Source of the DNA: Blepharisma stoltei ATCC 30299
Taxonomy: Eukaryota; Protista; Ciliophora
Reading direction: 5' to 3'
Assembly (NCBI GenBank): GCA_965603825.1
Contig: CBFDEM010000002.1
Coordinates: 124,001-188,000 of the forward strand
Length of the DNA stretch: 64,000 bases
Part shown: positions 4,903 through 48,331 of the stretch, piece by piece
Layout: every line of letters starts with the position of its first letter
Position numbering within the stretch: the first letter of the stretch is position 1
The notes under the pieces: generated by a model
What the model saw: the letters and a program-made list of their open reading frames with translations, nothing else
What the model was told of the DNA's origin: nothing
Database searches by the model: none
Translations under genes and position numbers: made by a program

Positions 4903-6513
4903 TTATGCAGAAGTTTCGCTGCTCTCTTCTGCGCTCTGGTCAGCTGTTTCTTCATCTGATGCAGTTTCTTCTTCAGTTTCATCAGATGTTTCATCGCTGG
5001 CGTAGTCTTCTAGATCTTCTCCTTCTTCAGTTTCATCTTCAGAGCTTGTTTCAGTTTCAAGTGTTTCACCTTCATCTTCATCTTCCACTTCGCTTTCCTC
5101 ATCTTCATCACTTTCTTCTTCTTCTTCAGTCTCCTCTTCACTATCTTCTGTGCTTTCCGTGCTTTCTGTGCTCTCTGTGCCTTCTTCTTCTTCTTCATCC
5201 TCCTCATCTTCTGTATCCCCAGTAGCTCCCTCCGGTTCTACGTCTTCTTCTTCCTCACTTTCTTCTTCCTCTTCTGAAGTCACCAAATTTTCATCAATAA
5301 ATTCATTTACAGACTCTTCCAAAGTATCTACCTCTACATTTAGTTCATTTAGCTCCTCTGTCAGATGGTCTTCAGTGTCCGCTATTTCTTCTTCAGTGCT
5401 TTGGCTTGATTCTTCTACAGCTCCTACAACTTCAGTCGTGCTCTGGTCTACAACTTCATTCATTTCGTCAACTACCTCTTCAGCAGTCCCTTTAGACAAT
5501 TCTTGCTGATAATACATTTCGTCCTCAATTTCTTCTTCAGCTAATTCGTCAACTTGTTCGCCAAGGCCTTCTAGCTCATTTTCTACATATACAGAATCCA
5601 CGTCGACTGCTTGGGCTTCTATAGTTTGGTCTTGGATGCTTTCGATTTCAGCTTGCAGCCTTTCGATTTGGCTGATTATATTTTCTGCTTGTTTTTCGTA
5701 CTCGTCTAAGTTTTCTTCATAAATTTCAGTGGAATCTTGGCTGGGAGAAGGAGTTACTGTTTGGCTGCTTTGGACGACTGAGGCTTCTATTCCATAATCT
5801 TTTGTTTTAGGGCACTCATCTTTGCCATCAGCTGAAGAGTGATAAAAAAATGCGGAGTTGCAGAAGCCTGGGTCTGAAGGAGTCCCTTCTAGACAATAGT
5901 CTCCGTCACTGCACCAGCCACAGTTTTCATCATTTAGGCAGGTTGTGCAGGTCAGATATTGTGAGCAGCCTTCTTCAGGGCAGATACCGTATTCCCAGCT
6001 ACTGCAGGATTCATAAAACGGCCCATCTTCATCTCCACTTGTGCAGATGTCGTCTCTGTCACACCATACACACTCGTTATTGGCGGTACATGAGGAGCAG
6101 GTATTGAAGTCTTCACATATGATTTCTGTGTTTTCTATTTCGTCTTCGGTGTATTCGATCCTGTCAGCTACTTCTTTTAGCTCCAATTTTAAGTCACTTA
6201 TTTCTGCATATAGGACACTTATAGCAAGTTCAGCAGAAGACTCAATAGATGCATCAATTTTTTCGTCAAGGGTGCTTAATGAAGAATCAGCTTGTTTTGA
6301 AAATTCAGAGACATTTTCGCTTAAAACTTCAACTCCGCCTGCCAATGTTCCTTTACTAGTTGACGTGCTGCTTGAGCTACCTCCAGAATCCTCAGTATTT
6401 GAGGAGGATTCTGATGTGTCGTCTTGGGTTATTGATAGAAATGACTGGGGTTTAGAAGATAGCAAGCCTGAAGATAAGAAAAGTCCTAAAACTAGAAAAA
6501 TACATTTTTGCAT
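4903..6513 (-). CDS. Secreted protein with coiled coils, two PSI-like Cys repeats and a very acidic C-terminal tail
   Basis: Signal-peptide-like N-terminus; CxxxxTCxxCxxxxxCxWC twice; E/D/S/T-rich tail. Confidence 0.75.
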   Translation of the reverse strand: MQKCIFLVLGLFLSSGLLSSKPQSFLSITQDDTSESSSNTEDSGGSSSSTSTSKGTLAGGVEVLSENVSEFSKQADSSLSTLDEKIDASIESSAELAISVLYAEISDLKLELKEVADRIEYTEDEIENTEIICEDFNTCSSCTANNECVWCDRDDICTSGDEDGPFYESCSSWEYGICPEEGCSQYLTCTTCLNDENCGWCSDGDYCLEGTPSDPGFCNSAFFYHSSADGKDECPKTKDYGIEASVVQSSQTVTPSPSQDSTEIYEENLDEYEKQAENIISQIERLQAEIESIQDQTIEAQAVDVDSVYVENELEGLGEQVDELAEEEIEDEMYYQQELSKGTAEEVVDEMNEVVDQSTTEVVGAVEESSQSTEEEIADTEDHLTEELNELNVEVDTLEESVNEFIDENLVTSEEEEESEEEEDVEPEGATGDTEDEEDEEEEEGTESTESTESTEDSEEETEEEEESDEDEESEVEDEDEGETLETETSSEDETEEGEDLEDYASDETSDETEEETASDEETADQSAEESSETSA

Positions 6514-34243: not shown

Positions 34244-34359
34244 TGTTTAATTAAACGATTAGAATTTTTTTAACACTAATTTTGGTATATTTGATATTTC
34301 TGGTTAAATTTTTGAAAACAAATTATAATAAAATTTTGATTAAATCTCAAAATACGAAT

Positions 34360-35085
34360 TTAATGCTGGTTTTCCTCTGCATCTTCTTCGCCTTTCAATT
34401 GGTTTATTTCATGTACTTCGTTCATGGGCTTACTGGCTTTGGTTCTCAAGGCGCCAGCAGCTCCTGCTGCGACCATCGTGCCTATGAGTGGAGCAAATGC
34501 ATAAACCCAGAGATGATCCAGGACTGAATCGTCTCCTGTATGAATATAGTGGATAATATTAAGTGTAATACACTGCGTTGGGTTAAAGCAGGCTCCTGAA
34601 ATCGGATGAGCCATGTTCGCCATAACCCATACAGTAATAATGACTGAAAAAATTGCAACCCAGTGAGGGTCTTTCCAAGTCTTCAAGTCTTTTATAATCA
34701 TCAAAGTCAAAATCAATTGACCAGTTCACACTACTTCAGTGAAAAATGCCTGGGCTTTGTCTTTATCAGGATTAATCAAAATTGCTAAGGTATCTCCTTC
34801 GACTGCCCAGCCGATCAGTCCACCTACCAAGTAGCCTAATATTTGAGTCATCATACAAAGGACAGTCTCAAGAGACTTAGTCCATGGATGATGAGTTTGG
34901 TTCAGCTCTCTGAAAAGACTGGCAAGACTGATGCACGGATTGAAGAAAGCAGCCCCAGCAGCTACGACACACATAAAGAGTCCCCATACAACCGCGATCC
35001 CGTTCCCTCCTGAGACATAAACAATGAAAGCCATCATCAAAGAGCCGTGAAATTCGACCATAGGCTTTAAATACAACTTCCCCAT
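34360..35085 (-). CDS. MIP/aquaporin-family channel with non-canonical NPC and NPT motifs
   Basis: VEFHGS, FFNPCISLA, TQILG, FFTEVVW(TGA), ISGACFNPTQ, LWVYAFAPLIG. Confidence 0.85.
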
Positions 35086-35481
35086 TTACTTATTATAAAA
35101 TCCATTCCTAATTTTAGCTGATTTGGTAAAATATCAAACAAATATTATTGATCATTGAAAAAGATAAGCAAATATCTACTTTGCCAGAATTGTAGTTTAA
35201 AAATATTGAAGGCTTTTTAAATGTGTCGGCTACTAAAAATAATTGTTATAAATAAAATTATAAAATTTCAAGATATTGGACAGTTATTCATCCTTTGCCA
35301 TTTTCTTAATCCTTTTAAGCAATTTTGTAGTCAAATATTGCCTCCATTTATTCGAATAATGCATCTGATAGGAATCAGTAAATGCGGCTGCTTACATGAT
35401 TTCAATAGACAGGCAATTAAAAATTAATTTTTATTGAAAATGCAAGAAGAATAAGAAATTTGTTTAGGGAAAATATAGAGT

Positions 35482-35534
35482 TCAGAAATTAAAATTTTAA
35501 TCAAAGATCATCGTGAACTATGGTAAGTCATCAT
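35482..35534 (-). ncRNA. Box C/D snoRNA 3 (candidate SSU guides)
   Basis: Box C ATGATGA, box D CTGA; TTACCATAGTT is complementary (one G-U) to recalled SSU AACUGUGGUAA. Confidence 0.6.
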
Positions 35535-35549
35535 AGAATTTTATTAAAA

Positions 35550-35604
35550 TCAGACAAATGCCTCATGAAATCAGATTTCATATTCGTCATCGTTTTGTCA
35601 TCAT
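35550..35604 (-). ncRNA. Box C/D snoRNA 2, U15/snR13/snR75-like LSU guide
   Basis: Boxes ATGATGA, D' ATGA, D CTGA; guides GATGACGA and GAGGCATTTG are complementary to LSU CAAAUGCCUCGUCAUC; the +5 rule gives the yeast Gm2288 and Am2281 equivalents. Confidence 0.85.
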
Positions 35605-35622
35605 ATGAAAATGTATAAAGTC

Positions 35623-35677
35623 TCAGATTGCAGTTAAAAAAGTCATCAATAGGCAGTCCGCCCGTTTTTATCTTCAT
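35623..35677 (-). ncRNA. Box C/D snoRNA 1, dual SSU guide (snR70/U43-like plus a second guide)
   Basis: Boxes ATGAAGA, D' CTGC, C' TTGATGA, D CTGA; ACGGGCGG is complementary to SSU CCGCCCGU and TTTTTAACTGCAA to SSU UUGCAGUUAAAAA. Confidence 0.8.
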
Positions 35678-36416
35678 TGCTAAGCGGATAAATCAAGGTT
35701 TTTGATTCTCGCTATTCTCAGTTCATTTTGTGGTAAATAATTATTATAAGCTAACTAATATGGAATCATAATTAGCTTTAAGAAATAATTTAGACTTAAT
35801 TAATTATACAGTCTAGATTTAATTTAAGCATTTCTGTCTCATTTAGAATTAAAATAATAATTTTTGGCTCGAAAATTAATTTATGACTGAAAATTTTATT
35901 AATTTTTTTATTGGTCTTTTAAGCGCCTTAGACTCATTTCATGTCTTATTTCTAAAGTAATTGATCTAAATAAAGTATTGGCCCTTGATTAATTTCTTTA
36001 TGACCTTTTAAACTCTAGATCAAAAAAACTTTTAAAATAGCTTTAATTATTTCTAGCTCTTAGCATAAAATTTTCTCACTTGGCACATAATCTAATAAGT
36101 TTGCATCAATTTATTTTATATTTTTAATTTAAAATAATTTATCACTTCTTTCCTCAAATTAGAAGAGCAAATTTCATATTTCCAAATATCTCAAAATCAA
36201 AAAATCCCTACAATTAGCATCTCCCTATAAATAAATAGTAGCGGCTCTGCCATTTAACTGAGTTTTAGAGCCCATTAGCGGTTTTCATTGTAGCCTGTGC
36301 TACAATTTAAATGCTAATATCATTTTTTGTCCATTAACCTCACATTGGCCCTTATAATTTAATTATCAAATTCCCTTTAAATACTTTCATCTTAAAATAA
36401 AAACAAAATCATTAAA

Positions 36417-38609
36417 ATGAAATCACCTGATCACTCGATGAGATCACAGAACCCTCTAATGCGTGACGGGCATTTGCCTATTCCTTCAAAAGATATAAAC
36501 CACTCAGGCGTTGAAAACAGCTCGTCATGCCACTCAGAAACTACTTGACAGCGGAAGCAGTTGAATGTGAAATTTTATTTGTGTTATTATTGCTTATTAT
36601 CAGTATGTCTCGGAAATTCCCTTGTTTATTATTCAGTTTACAACTCCTCTGCAAATTTTTTATTCCTTAGCATAATCCTCCTTATCGGAAGCATTTTATT
36701 TAGCTTGGCGATCATGATAATGGAGGTTCGAATTGGCTCAAGCCATATGAATAAATATATGTTAAATGAAATGGTTTACTTATTTGTAGGACTCTCCATA
36801 GTGTTTTCTGACCCGAATATAGTGGAGATTTTGATACAAACAGACAAACATCACGAATCCTTTGTGACGAGTTTTATGTTTTTAATGATTTTAGGGGTAA
36901 TCGCCCACAAGAATTTGGCAAGAAAAATCCGACAATTCATCGAAGTAAATGTGCTTCTTGGACTAATTACTTTCATATTGAATATGTTTGGAGAATTACA
37001 AAAAGGGCAAACAATTTTCCAATTCATTTTGTTTATTTTATTGACTTTTTATTTAGCAACTGAGCTGCAAAGTGTTGAATCCAATAGCATGAAGCTAGCC
37101 CCTGATAAGAGCGATGAATCCATAATGCTACATGAACATTTGGAGCAAAGATCTAAAAGCCTCAACGAAACAAAAGACCTAACAGTCCCTAGATCAGCTA
37201 ATACAACTATTGAAGAAATTGTATCATCTCTAGTTAAATCTTTTGATTTACTTTCTGAAGTTAATTCTCAAGATATATCAGTTCGCGAAAGTATCCAAAA
37301 ATCGTCTCAAATCATTCTTAGTGCCCTTGAAACCTTAAGGACTTCTTCTAATGTATATTCCACAAATTTAAAAAATATAACAAAAAATTTAGATGAGCAA
37401 GATAAAATGTTTATAGAACAGTCTTTTATTGACGCAAATAAAAGTGCAGGCTCAATGCATTCTTCTCCACCAGTGACTAAAAGAAGCCATAAAGACCCTC
37501 TTTATACGACAGAATATGGAGTTCCAGAATTAATGGGAATTTTAATACAGATTGGAAAAGATTGGAATTTTAATACATTTTTGATTGATGAGTGTACTAA
37601 AGGAGCCCCACTTTTATGCTGTGGTGTTTATGCATTAAGAAGATATGGACTTGATGAGATTTTTAGCATCACAGACCAAAGCTTGAAGACACTATTACAA
37701 ACATTAGAGTCAAAATATTATAAAAATCCTTACCACAACTCGTGCCATGCAGCTGATGTTATGAATTCCTACTTGTTTTTAATCCAAGCTTCTCAGCTGG
37801 TTGACGAGATGAGCAGCTTAGAGCTGATTTCAGGAATTTTAGCAGCATTGGCTCATGATGTAGGCCATCCTGCGAAAAATAATAGATTTTTGATAATGAG
37901 CAACGACGATTTAGCTATACAATTTAATGACATAAGTGTGCTAGAAATGCTTCATGCGTCTACATTTTTTAAAATTTTGAAAGCTCAAGAACCGTGCTTA
38001 TTTAAGAGTCTGCAGCTTGAAAAATGGCACCAAATGAGAAAGTTAATTATTGAGCTAATTTTAGCGACTGATATGGGAAAGCATTTTGAGCTTATGGGGT
38101 ATTTTAATTCAAAATATTTAAGTATGAGCGAACTCCCAGAGCTTTCGGACCCTGAGTTTAGACTAGACCAATATAAAATGGCTATTAAAGCAGCTGATAT
38201 TGGCCATGCAGCGAAATCAGTAGAGCTCCATCAAAAGTGGTGTGGGCTAGCAATAAAAGAATTTTTTGCACAAGGAGAATTAGAAAAGTCATTAGGAATT
38301 CCTGTTTCTATGTATTGTGATAAAGATACAACAGATATTTCTAAATCACAAGCTGGGTTTATCAAAAATATAGTTTCACCTTTGTTTATGGCTTTAAATA
38401 AAGTTATGAATTCTCAAAGTATTGAAGATAACTGTATAGCTCAGCTAAAAATAAATGAAGGGTTTTGGAATTCAAAAAGGTCTTATAAGCAGTATCAAAC
38501 TGTCCTCATGCGTAAAGACGAAGAAAATGAAAAATCCAGATTCGATGGCCTCGTGAGTCGCAGTCAAATATTTAGGCACTCAAACTTGGCTGAAAAATAT
38601 CTTTCATAA
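36417..38609 (+). CDS. Class I cyclic-nucleotide phosphodiesterase with N-terminal multi-TM region
   Basis: NPYHNSCHAADV, AALAHDVGHP, SVLEMLHAS, ILATDM, KAADIGH, EFFAQGELEK, SQAGFI; start extended through TGA. Confidence 0.9.
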
Positions 38610-44713: not shown

Positions 44714-46414
44714 ATGCATCCTAAATCGCTTCAAGAGTCTTTTCAAGTTTTTCATCACACATCTCATATGAGACGTAAAGAAGATAGAGAATTTGTGCTG
44801 TTTTTGACAGAAATTGCGTCACTTGAAGAACTTTATGCTAGAGGCTTGGAAAAAATTGGAAATTATCCGTATGAATTTAAAGAAGAAGGTGGAATATCAG
44901 AAGCTATTGCTGAGCTTAAAGCAGAGCAATTGTATAAGGCTAAGCAAGTTAGAACTTATGCTGAAAAGATTATTACTGAGTTAGCTGATCCTTTTAAAGA
45001 TTTACTTAAAAATCAATCTCAAGCTATCAAGAAAGCGTATGCCAAGATGATGAATATCGACAAAAGCCAAGAATTAATTTTAGAAAAATACAAATCCGCA
45101 AGGAATAAATACTGAAAATCGTGCAGTGAATGCGAGCAATATGCAATATCATTAGAAGAGTCTAAATCCAAGATTAAAACAGAAAAAATCGTTCAAAAAT
45201 TACTGGCAAGCAAAAAAGAAATTGATATAAGCCTAAAAGGCTACTTAGAAACAGTAGAAGAGTTTGATAAGCACAGCAAAAAATACAAAACAATGGTCTC
45301 TAATGTAATAGAAACTTATGAAAAACAAGAAGAAAAAAGGCTTAACTCAATCAAAGACTCCTTAATCAAAATCACAGAATATGAAGCTGAGTCTCTTGTA
45401 AACAGCTTATACGAAATTCAAGCTCTCAAAAGTAAAATGCATTCCATAGAAATAAGCCAAGAAATCGACAAATTTAAATCAGAAAGCCCAGACAGTTCTT
45501 TATTTACTTTAGAAATTGCATTTGAGCCCTATGAAGGAGTTCATCCATCCTTCAGATCACTTATGGGTTCTCCTATAATATCAATCCCTACAAGTGAAGA
45601 CCAAAAGTGAGACAAGCTTTCGACTCAATCAGCAATAGAAGGTATGTATTTAAGTGGCCTTGAAACTATTATAGAAAAAGCTTGGAATGGTATAGAGCTG
45701 AATGTTGAAGATTATATTAACTTCAACCATCTCATTAAAGACCCTCAAGGCAGAAAATCGTGATCTCGATGTATGAATTTAAGAAGAAGCCATGGTATTT
45801 TTACCTTAAATGAGCTAGGTTTTAGACAAGTAGGAGAACTAATGATTTCAGTATTAAATGAATGTGAATTAGTTAATGACATACAAATTGGTAAAAGTGT
45901 TATTATTCTTTCGCAAACTTTCCACAAAATATTAGGCGACGGAGAAGACAAAAAGCAATTTCTTCAGAATTTTATCACTCATCATTCTTTATGGGCCCAT
46001 ATGGAGTTTTGAGATCAAGTAATACAGACATCAATAAATGAAGAAAATAAAAACCATGAAAACTTAGGAATGACGAATGCAGAAACTTCTCAAGAAACTT
46101 CACAAAGACTGAAAAGGGTTGTATTTTGCCAACTAATTTCGTATTCGCATATTATGATTACTTTTCAAGTAAATCAGCTTGCCGCAGCAGAATTGGTGTT
46201 AGGGTATGTAAATAAATATAAGATCATTCTTGAGGAAGCGAATCAGCTAATGGTGAGGTATATTTAGGCTATGATTGATAAGGATTTGTTGACCAAAATT
46301 AAGGATTTAGAGGGAGATCAGTATCCAAGGTTAGTTGAATGGGCAAAAGAGTATAGCAGCAGTGTAGTGGAGAGTGAAAATTCAGATGCAAGTGAAGATT
46401 CACTGATGGAATAA
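44714..46414 (+). CDS. F-BAR (FCH) protein with an SBF2-like C-terminal domain (intron 46253-46267)
   Basis: FLTEIASLEELYARGLEKI, coiled coil; IILSQTFH..HSLWAHMEFW; single frame through TGA. Confidence 0.7.
46253..46267 (+). other. 15-nt intron
   Basis: GTGAGGTATATTTAG; in-frame TAG. Confidence 0.85.
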
Positions 46415-47332: not shown

Positions 47333-48331
47333 ATGTCTCACACAGAGCGTAAAGTCTGGAGTCAAGAGGTACCTAATAAGTAGGAAGATGACGCAATTCA
47401 AGATCTAGTTGACGAATTCGGGGACAAAAATTGGATTTTAATTGCAGAAAAGCTCGTCGAAAAATTCCAAATTCAAGGAAGAACAGGAAAACAATGTAGA
47501 GAACGTTGGCATAATCACATTGATCCAGGATTAAAGAAAGCAGGCTGAACCAAGGAAGAAGAAAACATTCTTTTCCAAAAGCAGAAAATATTTGGCAACA
47601 GATGGTCAGAAATAGCAAGATACCTACCAGGAAGATCTGATAATTCCATAAAAAATCAATTCTACAGCACAGTAAGAAAAAATTTAAGAAAATACAATAG
47701 GAATAAGCCGACTGATAAGCGAATTGTAGGCTCTCTAAAGCAGCTTTTGCAGAACCCCGAAATAGCCAAGATTTTGATAACTTATAGTGGGCCTCATGAA
47801 GATCTGAAAGACCCAGATACCAAAAAATCAAAAAAAAATAAAAATCTGAGAAAAGCTTCTATTAATACTGAAGAAGTCAATAACGAAGCTTCCTCAATTT
47901 TGCAGTCACTATATGATGACTCCAAAGAAAAGACGGAAAATCCAGCCCCTCCGAAACTTGAAAAAATAAAAGAGCTGGAGCTAAAAATAGATTCGGCGAC
48001 CCCAATTGCGAGCTTGAATTCTACAACTCCACTGATAGGTCAAACATCGACTTTCCGAGGAGCACACGTTTTTAATTTCCCTGAAGATAGCACGATGTAT
48101 TATAATTGGGATGGTTATAACGCTGGAGAATTAGATGGAATTCATGGGCCAGACTCGCAGCAGGACTCAATGCCTTTTCAAAAATTTGACTCTTTGCAAG
48201 GGTCTAGTAGGTCAGAAACTCTGAATTTTTTGAGGCAAATGCAGTCTCCACATGCAAATACTTTTATTTTGCCTCCATTTTCACCAATGGATTCATTTCA
48301 GCACTATCTTAGTCCAAGAAATAATAAATAG
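47333..48331 (+). CDS. R2R3-type Myb transcription factor (intron 47369-47383)
   Basis: WSQE|EDDAI..NWILIA..GRTGKQCRERWHNHI..GW(TGA)TKEEE..GNRWSEIARYLPGRSDNSIKNQF. Confidence 0.9.
47369..47383 (+). other. 15-nt intron
   Basis: GTACCTAATAAGTAG; in-frame TAG. Confidence 0.9.

Follow-up and report, generated by a model that had tools for sequence, protein, structure and literature searches.

In the ciliate Tetrahymena thermophila, small nucleolar RNAs of the box C/D kind (snoRNAs; designated TtnuCD) are typically 55-77 nucleotides (nt) long, contain C' and D' boxes and mostly lack a terminal stem, and their genes are mostly intergenic and in some cases clustered, lying 169-421 nt apart, many with an upstream element of their own (PMC3273799). 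Polycistrons of yeast (snR72-78), plants and trypanosomatids carry several snoRNAs of the same strand in one precursor, from which they are released by endonuclease and exonuclease (PMC7277114, PMC3273799), and archaeal C/D small RNAs (sRNAs) of about 50-60 nt combine two guides with a 4-nt D'-C' linker and no long terminal stem. Here, we describe a cluster of three miniature box C/D snoRNA units on the minus strand of a 64,000-nt stretch of DNA (hereafter, the window; contig CBFDEM010000002.1 of assembly GCA_965603825.1, positions 124,001 to 188,000 of the forward strand) from the heterotrich ciliate Blepharisma stoltei ATCC 30299, whose macronuclear genome of 41 Mbp consists of 64 telomere-to-telomere contigs, reads UGA as Trp and has introns of 15-16 nt (PMC9942806). 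The cluster occupies positions 35677-35482 of the window. It very probably forms a tricistronic gene of its own in intergenic macronuclear DNA, encoding three box C/D snoRNAs of minimal size, a reading carried by the order of the boxes, five guides complementary to ribosomal RNA (rRNA), three guides shared with known families and unbroken RNA across the spacers, all of which were observed.

All three units display the box order C-D'-C'-D, with a D'-C' linker of 4 nt in each unit and guide slots of 12-16 nt (Table 1). The box-to-box guide spacings are 14/16 nt in unit 1, 16/14 nt in unit 2 and 16/12 nt in unit 3. Units 2 and 3 contain canonical C (AUGAUGA) and D (CUGA) boxes, and the box positions of unit 2 are further backed by alignment with metagenomic homologues. 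An initial annotation, made from the sequence alone, had placed units of 55, 55 and 53 nt with gaps of 18 and 15 nt on the minus strand, a geometry that proved exact to the base. Its description of the units as archaeal-like in size and devoid of terminal stems was also borne out by the unit lengths of 53-55 nt and by the 231-nt precursor (35470-35700), which folds no better than its shuffles (z = 0.14) and forms no terminal or external stem. No coding potential was identified at the cluster under the UGA=Trp code. The cluster sequence is present as a single copy in the genome, which also encodes two fibrillarins.

Like their counterparts in Tetrahymena, the Blepharisma units belong to a ciliate and are small, stemless and intergenic, and as terminal stems are mostly absent in Tetrahymena as well, such a stem is no defining feature of the class in ciliates. 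In contrast to the Tetrahymena clusters, the spacers of 15-18 nt leave no room for internal promoters. The arrangement on one strand within one precursor is shared with the polycistrons of yeast, plants and trypanosomatids; in yeast, however, Rnt1 cuts hairpins within the spacers, which the 15-18-nt spacers of Blepharisma cannot form, the precursor having no significant structure. Archaeal C/D sRNAs are similar in size, in having two guides, in the 4-nt linker and in lacking a long terminal stem, and the target of unit 1 has an archaeal counterpart guided by sR12 (PMC3511168). Yet the genome, the rRNA targets and the relatives of the Blepharisma units are eukaryotic, and their guide spacing varies between 12 and 16 nt, whereas it is fixed at 12 nt in archaea. 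The archaeal resemblance is thus one of convergent compaction and not of membership.

The guide slots were compared with the small subunit (SSU) and large subunit (LSU) rRNA genes of the same genome, and the target nucleotides were assigned by the +5 rule. Five of the six slots pair with the genome's own rRNA (Table 1). The four complementarities to conserved rRNA that the initial annotation had proposed were all recovered in the rRNA of Blepharisma itself, namely CCGCCCGU at SSU 1584, the 13-nt UUGCAGUUAAAAA at SSU 577, CAAAUGCCUC at LSU 2094 and UCGUCAUC at LSU 2102. Its term 'dual-guide' is appropriate for units 1 and 2 but not for unit 3; for the latter it had named no target, and unit 3 was found to carry an snR60/U80-type guide to LSU A708. 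When each guide was shuffled and the longest Watson-Crick stretch with its anchor 1-3 nt away from the box was scored, three guides exceeded chance expectation, with P values of 0.0004 for guide 2 of unit 1, 0.0105 for guide 2 of unit 2 and 0.016 for guide 1 of unit 3.

The predicted targets coincide with, or adjoin, methylation sites of other eukaryotes. SSU C1587, which we take from its conserved sequence context to be the equivalent of yeast Cm1639, lies within the universal decoding-site sequence ACACCGC[C]CGUC, the +5 nucleotide being the first C after the G (CCG[C]CCGU). The decoding-site C (Cm1639 in yeast) is of the site type guided by U43/snR70 (PMC3511168, PMC5199042). LSU A2097 and G2104, the predicted targets of unit 2, are 7 nt apart, and C2094 precedes A2097 by three nt. 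The yeast series comprises m5C2278, Am2281 (snR13) and Gm2288 (snR75), with Gm2288 located 7 nt 3' of Am2281 (PMC5199042). As both the spacing and the preceding C match this site list, A2097 and G2104 are the equivalents of Am2281 and Gm2288. In unit 3, the guide core equals the consensus of snR60/Z15 with one extra nucleotide before D' in the Rfam alignment, so that the +5 rule selects A708, the first A of GUGAAC. In the yeast 25S rRNA, Am817 is presumably the second A of this motif (A709 in Blepharisma). Thus, the predicted target of unit 3 would be either the snR60/U80 site or its 5' neighbor.

Three of the guides are common to known snoRNA families. Relaxed Rfam searches were conducted with a 451-nt region for units 2 and 3 and with 79 nt for unit 1 alone. 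Unit 2 matched plasmodium_snoR21 with 35.5 bits (threshold 90; E value 0.0064) and both guides covered, SNOR75 with 19.9 bits (gathering threshold 50) and SNORD15 with 15.6 bits (gathering threshold 75); on these scores it is treated as a putative same-target relative and not as a family member. Unit 3 matched snR60/Z15 (RF00309) with 26.8 bits (gathering threshold 41; E value 0.026). It is devoid of the second guide of snR60, directed at the Gm908-equivalent, its 3' slot consisting of A and U only. Unit 1 showed a weak full-length match to Tetrahymena TtnuCD9 (RF02286; 21 bits, E value 0.33), a 55-nt RNA whose model of 55 positions has the same 3' guide and the same spacing to box D, whereas the 5' guide of unit 1 is unlike that of TtnuCD9. 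No match of unit 1 to models of the U43/snR70 clan (CL00059) was listed in the relaxed searches.

Unit 2 shares its two targets, guide order and box spacing with the U15/snR13/snR75 clan (CL00045), including Arabidopsis AtU15, which guides both the Am2281- and the Gm2288-equivalent (PMC3511168), and Plasmodium snoR21. A search of metagenome contigs for its signature (C box, guide 1, guide 2 and D box) identified 107 stretches, 71 of them distinct, of 58-78 nt on contigs of 13-61% G+C; one locus labeled as human gut metagenome (L112) was excluded from all comparisons. This signature cannot be produced by antisense rDNA, as the two targets overlap in the rRNA and the guides lie 10-40 nt apart in the matches. 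The metagenomic relatives have the same D'/C' placement and one more pair in guide 1, and none of these loci carries a guide of unit 1 or unit 3 within 400 nt. Measured from UGAUGA to CUGA, unit 2 is the shortest version seen, at 54 nt; the 71 metagenomic relatives measure 58-78 nt, and the Plasmodium model has 145 positions. The D' guide of unit 2 has lost one pair; the U15 equivalent of Tetrahymena, TtnuCD10, has 117 nt compared with the 55 nt of unit 2. From its sequence, unit 2 would be a member-like relative, reduced in length, of an ancient snoRNA with two guides. Comparative work traces U15/snR13/snR75, U80/snR60 and U43/snR70 back to the last eukaryotic common ancestor (PMC3511168). 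Across the metagenomic loci (L035-L141), U15-type double guides from many eukaryotes often occur as two or three tandem copies per contig, and terminal stems are kept in the G+C-richer versions and absent from the AT-rich ones.

Transcription was assessed with Logan contigs, built from 31-letter words, of four public runs (X1-X4) of one 2022 study. In all runs the genes are covered, while positions 35740-36420 are uncovered save for one 169-nt contig at a depth of 2.7, and neighboring genes of the same chromosome piece differ about 10-fold in depth. These runs behave as RNA, as the adjacent 680 nt are uncovered and the depths differ by about 10-fold. The shortest contig covering all three units (X4, record 24) extends over 222 nt, from 35476 to 35697, at a depth of 78; the corresponding contigs of X3 and X1 extend from 35450 to 35738 (289 nt, depth 44) and from 35156 to 35697 (depth 22), respectively. 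Contigs of this kind can bridge the 15- and 18-nt spacers only where reads extend over them, and a precursor RNA with all three units therefore exists; the precursor across the spacers that had been predicted from the sequence was thus found as single contigs over all three units in three runs. Spacer-spanning RNA indicates a polycistronic precursor, and the contig end at 35697 that two runs have in common suggests that the RNA begins about 20 nt ahead of the first C box.

Several observations weigh against an independent gene for three snoRNAs. A search of the whole window against Rfam at gathering thresholds gave nothing, and all scores of the relaxed searches are far below these thresholds. 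The C box of unit 1 (AUGAAGA) departs in one position from RUGAUGA, and its D' box reads CUGC. The second guide slot of unit 3 (35497-35486) has no convincing rRNA target, the best being low-complexity duplexes of 8-9 pairs in several places, and the two 8-pair guides are not significant by length (P about 0.15-0.17; 0.15 for guide 1 of unit 1). Furthermore, the RNA nature of the runs is deduced from their behavior and is not on record, and in two of the four runs cover extends without a break into the downstream aquaporin-like gene, the other two having a gap.

Boxes and complementarities that arose by chance in AT-rich intergenic DNA, or decayed pseudogenes that no longer guide, might leave such a pattern of two guides with only 8 pairs and one with none. 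The same scan of the window also gave chance matches in coding sequence, and among 57 solitary matches to the unit pattern elsewhere in the genome, 50 have no snoRNA-like guide and 44 are located in open reading frames. This explanation is nevertheless highly improbable, given that three guides reach significance on their own, each in correct register with the boxes, that three guides match known families, and that the locus is transcribed at the depths of neighboring genes, in contrast to the silent 680 nt beside it. In addition, the two 8-pair guides are supported by their positions at conserved methylation sites and, in the case of unit 2, by the 71 homologues.

The cluster is flanked by two genes that stay open only if UGA is read as Trp and that leave an AT-rich interval of 1.3 kb between them. 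Upstream, a divergent cyclic-nucleotide phosphodiesterase gene starts near 36417, and downstream, on the same strand as the cluster, the ATG of a MIP/aquaporin-family gene at 35085 lies 397 nt past the last D box. The snoRNAs could be released from the aquaporin-like mRNA, if its transcription began further upstream and gave it a long 5' leader, and the aquaporin-like gene would then act as an intron-free host gene. In X2 a single contig extends from 35641 through the aquaporin-like gene, and in X1 the contigs of cluster and gene overlap by k-1 letters. The cluster contigs of X3 and X4 are, however, separate, with no cover at about 35085-35450, and in X1 a depth of 22 over the cluster compares with 275 over the gene, whose contig starts near 35185. 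As one contig over two genes does not prove one transcript, and given these depths and gaps, a host leader appears unlikely. The continuous cover from 35085 to 35697 points to either leaky termination or an alternative upstream start of the aquaporin-like mRNA.

An independent gene could also be transcribed by RNA polymerase III, with termination at a run of four T (35473-35470) that is located 9 nt past the last D box, the shortest contig ending at 35476. This enzyme has been proposed for the snoRNA clusters of Paramecium, as cited in the work on Tetrahymena (PMC3273799). It is a distinctly unlikely choice here, as a run of six T (35641) and runs of four T (35611, 35549 and 35494) lie inside the transcribed part and are read through by the contigs, and other contigs extend hundreds of nt beyond 35470.

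Similar loci are present elsewhere in the genome. A tandem pattern (C box, 38-56 nt, D box, 8-30 nt and the next C box) had 28 matches in the genome and none in a reversed control, several of the former being acidic coding repeats. At least six further loci contain tandem units of 49-59 nt separated by spacers of 14-22 nt, with guides forming 9-14 pairs with the genome's own rRNA (Table 1). The single-unit pattern, which is not a full census, gave 88 matches, and among the 57 solitary ones of at most 62 nt that were examined, only three are snoRNA-like (L156, L176 and L147), all of them intergenic and 52-54 nt long. Compact clusters, which the initial annotation had proposed as intergenic polycistrons of this lineage, are therefore common in the genome, but solitary miniature C/D genes exist too, and clusters are not the sole arrangement.

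Table 1. Positions of the snoRNA cluster, its guides and flanking elements in the window, and of similar loci elsewhere in the genome; boxes on the minus strand are given in reading direction.
Feature	Position	Strand	Description
Unit 1	35623..35677	-	55-nt box C/D snoRNA; read from sequence
Unit 1 boxes	C 35677-35671; D' 35656-35653; C' 35648-35643; D 35626-35623	-	C AUGAAGA; D' CUGC; C' UGAUGA; D CUGA
Unit 1 guide 1	35658..35665	-	ACGGGCGG; 8 Watson-Crick pairs, G/C-rich, SSU 1584-1591; +5 from D' = SSU C1587
Unit 1 guide 2	35627..35641	-	13 Watson-Crick and 2 G-U pairs, SSU 576-590; +5 from D = SSU C580
Spacer 1	35605..35622	-	18 nt, AU-rich, without hairpin; bridged by RNA contigs
Unit 2	35550..35604	-	55-nt U15-type double-guide box C/D snoRNA
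Unit 2 boxes	C 35604-35598; D' 35581-35578; C' 35573-35568; D 35553-35550	-	C AUGAUGA; D' AUGA; C' UGAUUU
Unit 2 guide 1	35584..35591	-	GAUGACGA; 8 pairs, LSU 2102-2109; +5 from D' = LSU G2104
Unit 2 guide 2	35555..35566	-	11 Watson-Crick pairs and 1 G-U pair, LSU 2094-2105; +5 from D = LSU A2097; U15/snR13-type (PMC3511168)
Spacer 2	35535..35549	-	15 nt, AU-rich, without hairpin; bridged by RNA contigs
Unit 3	35482..35534	-	53-nt box C/D snoRNA; relaxed Rfam match snR60/Z15
Unit 3 boxes	C 35534-35528; D' 35511-35508; C' 35503-35498; D 35485-35482	-	C AUGAUGA; D' AUGA; C' UGAUUA
Unit 3 guide 1	35513..35522	-	CAUAGUUCAC; 10 pairs, LSU 705-714; +5 from D' = LSU A708
Unit 3 guide slot 2	35486..35497	-	12 nt, A/U only, orphan
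Minimal tricistronic precursor	35476..35697	- (strand from boxes, not contigs)	Leader of ~20 nt, trailer of ~6 nt
Possible promoter	35741..35766	-	UUCCAUAUU (35766-35758), then TATA-like UAUAAUAA (35748-35741)
Further tandem loci			L009, L011, L012, L016-L018 (at least 4 units), L026, L028
L176	G000:C37:507540-507592	+	Solitary mini unit; 12-pair guide to SSU A28, conserved U27/snR74 site
L156	G000:C14:599658-599711	-	Solitary mini unit; 10- and 11-pair guides, LSU U2524 and U2514
L147	G000:C9:292259-292310	+	Solitary mini unit

One of the further clusters (L016; G000:C24, about 141560-141850, plus strand) contains at least four tandem units of 51, 52, 53 and 59 nt with spacers of 15, 22 and 14 nt, and one of its units has a 12-pair guide into the 5.8S region. 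At L011 (1569-1622; G000:C5, plus strand), the 12-pair guide of a 54-nt unit is directed at SSU A585, at a distance of five nt from C580, and the 18S stretch around the predicted sites C580 and A585 would be densely methylated. The genome contains at least 12 SSU rRNA genes that are nearly identical (1692 bits each) and are dispersed over 11 contigs, C1, C4, C12, C23, C34, C41, C51 (twice), C52, C53, C54 and C56, and at least four LSU genes adjoin SSU genes; the rDNA is accordingly not a single array or minichromosome.

A (U/C)CCAU(A/G)UU element together with a TATA-like box is located upstream of the present cluster, of the tandem loci L009, L016 and L026, and of the solitary units L147 and L156. 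Such CCAT-plus-TATA pairs precede four of seven clusters compared with 6% of AT-rich tiles, in addition to the two solitary units; the choice of the motif was made with hindsight, and it lies 14 to 87 nt from the C box, depending on the locus. The snoRNA genes of Tetrahymena share the upstream element AAACCCATAA (PMC3273799), which the tentative promoter at 35766-35741 resembles; the latter may serve as a lead.

Other snoRNA-like matches in the 64-kb window were not retained. A possible fourth unit downstream of the cluster, a SNORD11-like match at 35361-35443 (22 bits, E value 0.11), has no C box; on the minus strand it has paired GCAU/AUGC ends, is covered by the X1 contig only, and is probably not a snoRNA. 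The matches at 5975-6032, 46038-46112, 47796-48035 and 34766-35013 fall into coding sequence and look like chance. The MIP/aquaporin-family gene (34300-35085, minus strand), translated with UGA as Trp, contains NPC and NPT in place of both NPA motifs and is strongly expressed, with contig depths of 157-275.

For an independent tricistronic gene, transcription would start near 35697-35738, some 20-60 nt ahead of the first C box, perhaps from the CCAT-plus-TATA element at 35766-35741. The likely enzyme would be RNA polymerase II, which is favored over RNA polymerase III by the runs of 4-6 T inside the transcribed part. Each C/D and C'/D' pair would be bound by Snu13, Nop56, Nop58 and fibrillarin, the single-stranded, AU-rich spacers of 18 and 15 nt would be severed by an endonuclease, and 5'-3' and 3'-5' exonucleases would trim the ends to the protein-protected boxes, in the manner of yeast and plant polycistrons (PMC7277114), with predicted RNAs of roughly 55-62 nt. 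The resulting small nucleolar ribonucleoproteins (snoRNPs) are predicted to direct 2'-O-methylation at SSU C1587 (decoding site, U43/snR70-type), SSU C580 (shared with TtnuCD9), LSU A2097 and G2104 (U15/snR13- and snR75-type) and LSU A708 (the snR60/U80 site or the nucleotide beside it). Leaky termination would explain why cover runs into the aquaporin-like gene in two of the four samples.

The initial annotation had further suggested an uncharacterized processing route. Processing is indeed unstudied in heterotrichs, but nothing found at this locus demonstrates a new route, polycistronic processing is well known from other organisms (PMC7277114), and small stemless snoRNAs are known from Tetrahymena (PMC3273799). 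A more far-reaching scenario, which we consider unlikely, is that heterotrichs with introns of 15-16 nt have reduced their C/D snoRNAs to archaeal minimum size, pack many of them into polycistrons with hairpin-free spacers of ~15-20 nt, and release them independently of Rnt1-type RNase III hairpins by an endonuclease that reads the short, single-stranded AU-rich spacers or the snoRNP boundaries. We know of no eukaryote for which release independent of Rnt1-type hairpins, via short AU-rich spacers or snoRNP boundaries, has been described.

With these units, known families gain new members in an arrangement that is itself known, packed more tightly than the clusters of Tetrahymena, and only the spacers, being very short and unstructured, could conceal anything new. 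The published annotation of the Blepharisma stoltei genome comprises only transfer RNA (tRNA), rRNA, signal recognition particle and spliceosomal RNAs (bioRxiv 10.1101/2021.12.14.471607), and the present snoRNAs and the methylation sites predicted from them are therefore unannotated. In an otherwise ordinary gene class with the expected arrangement, the cluster shows how far eukaryotic C/D snoRNA genes can shrink, i.e. to about 53-55 nt per unit and spacers of 15-18 nt, and provides a compact natural system for studying the minimal requirements of snoRNA release from a precursor without hairpins or terminal stems. Furthermore, three ancestral guide types (U43/snR70, U15/snR13/snR75 and U80/snR60) persist in this early-branching ciliate.

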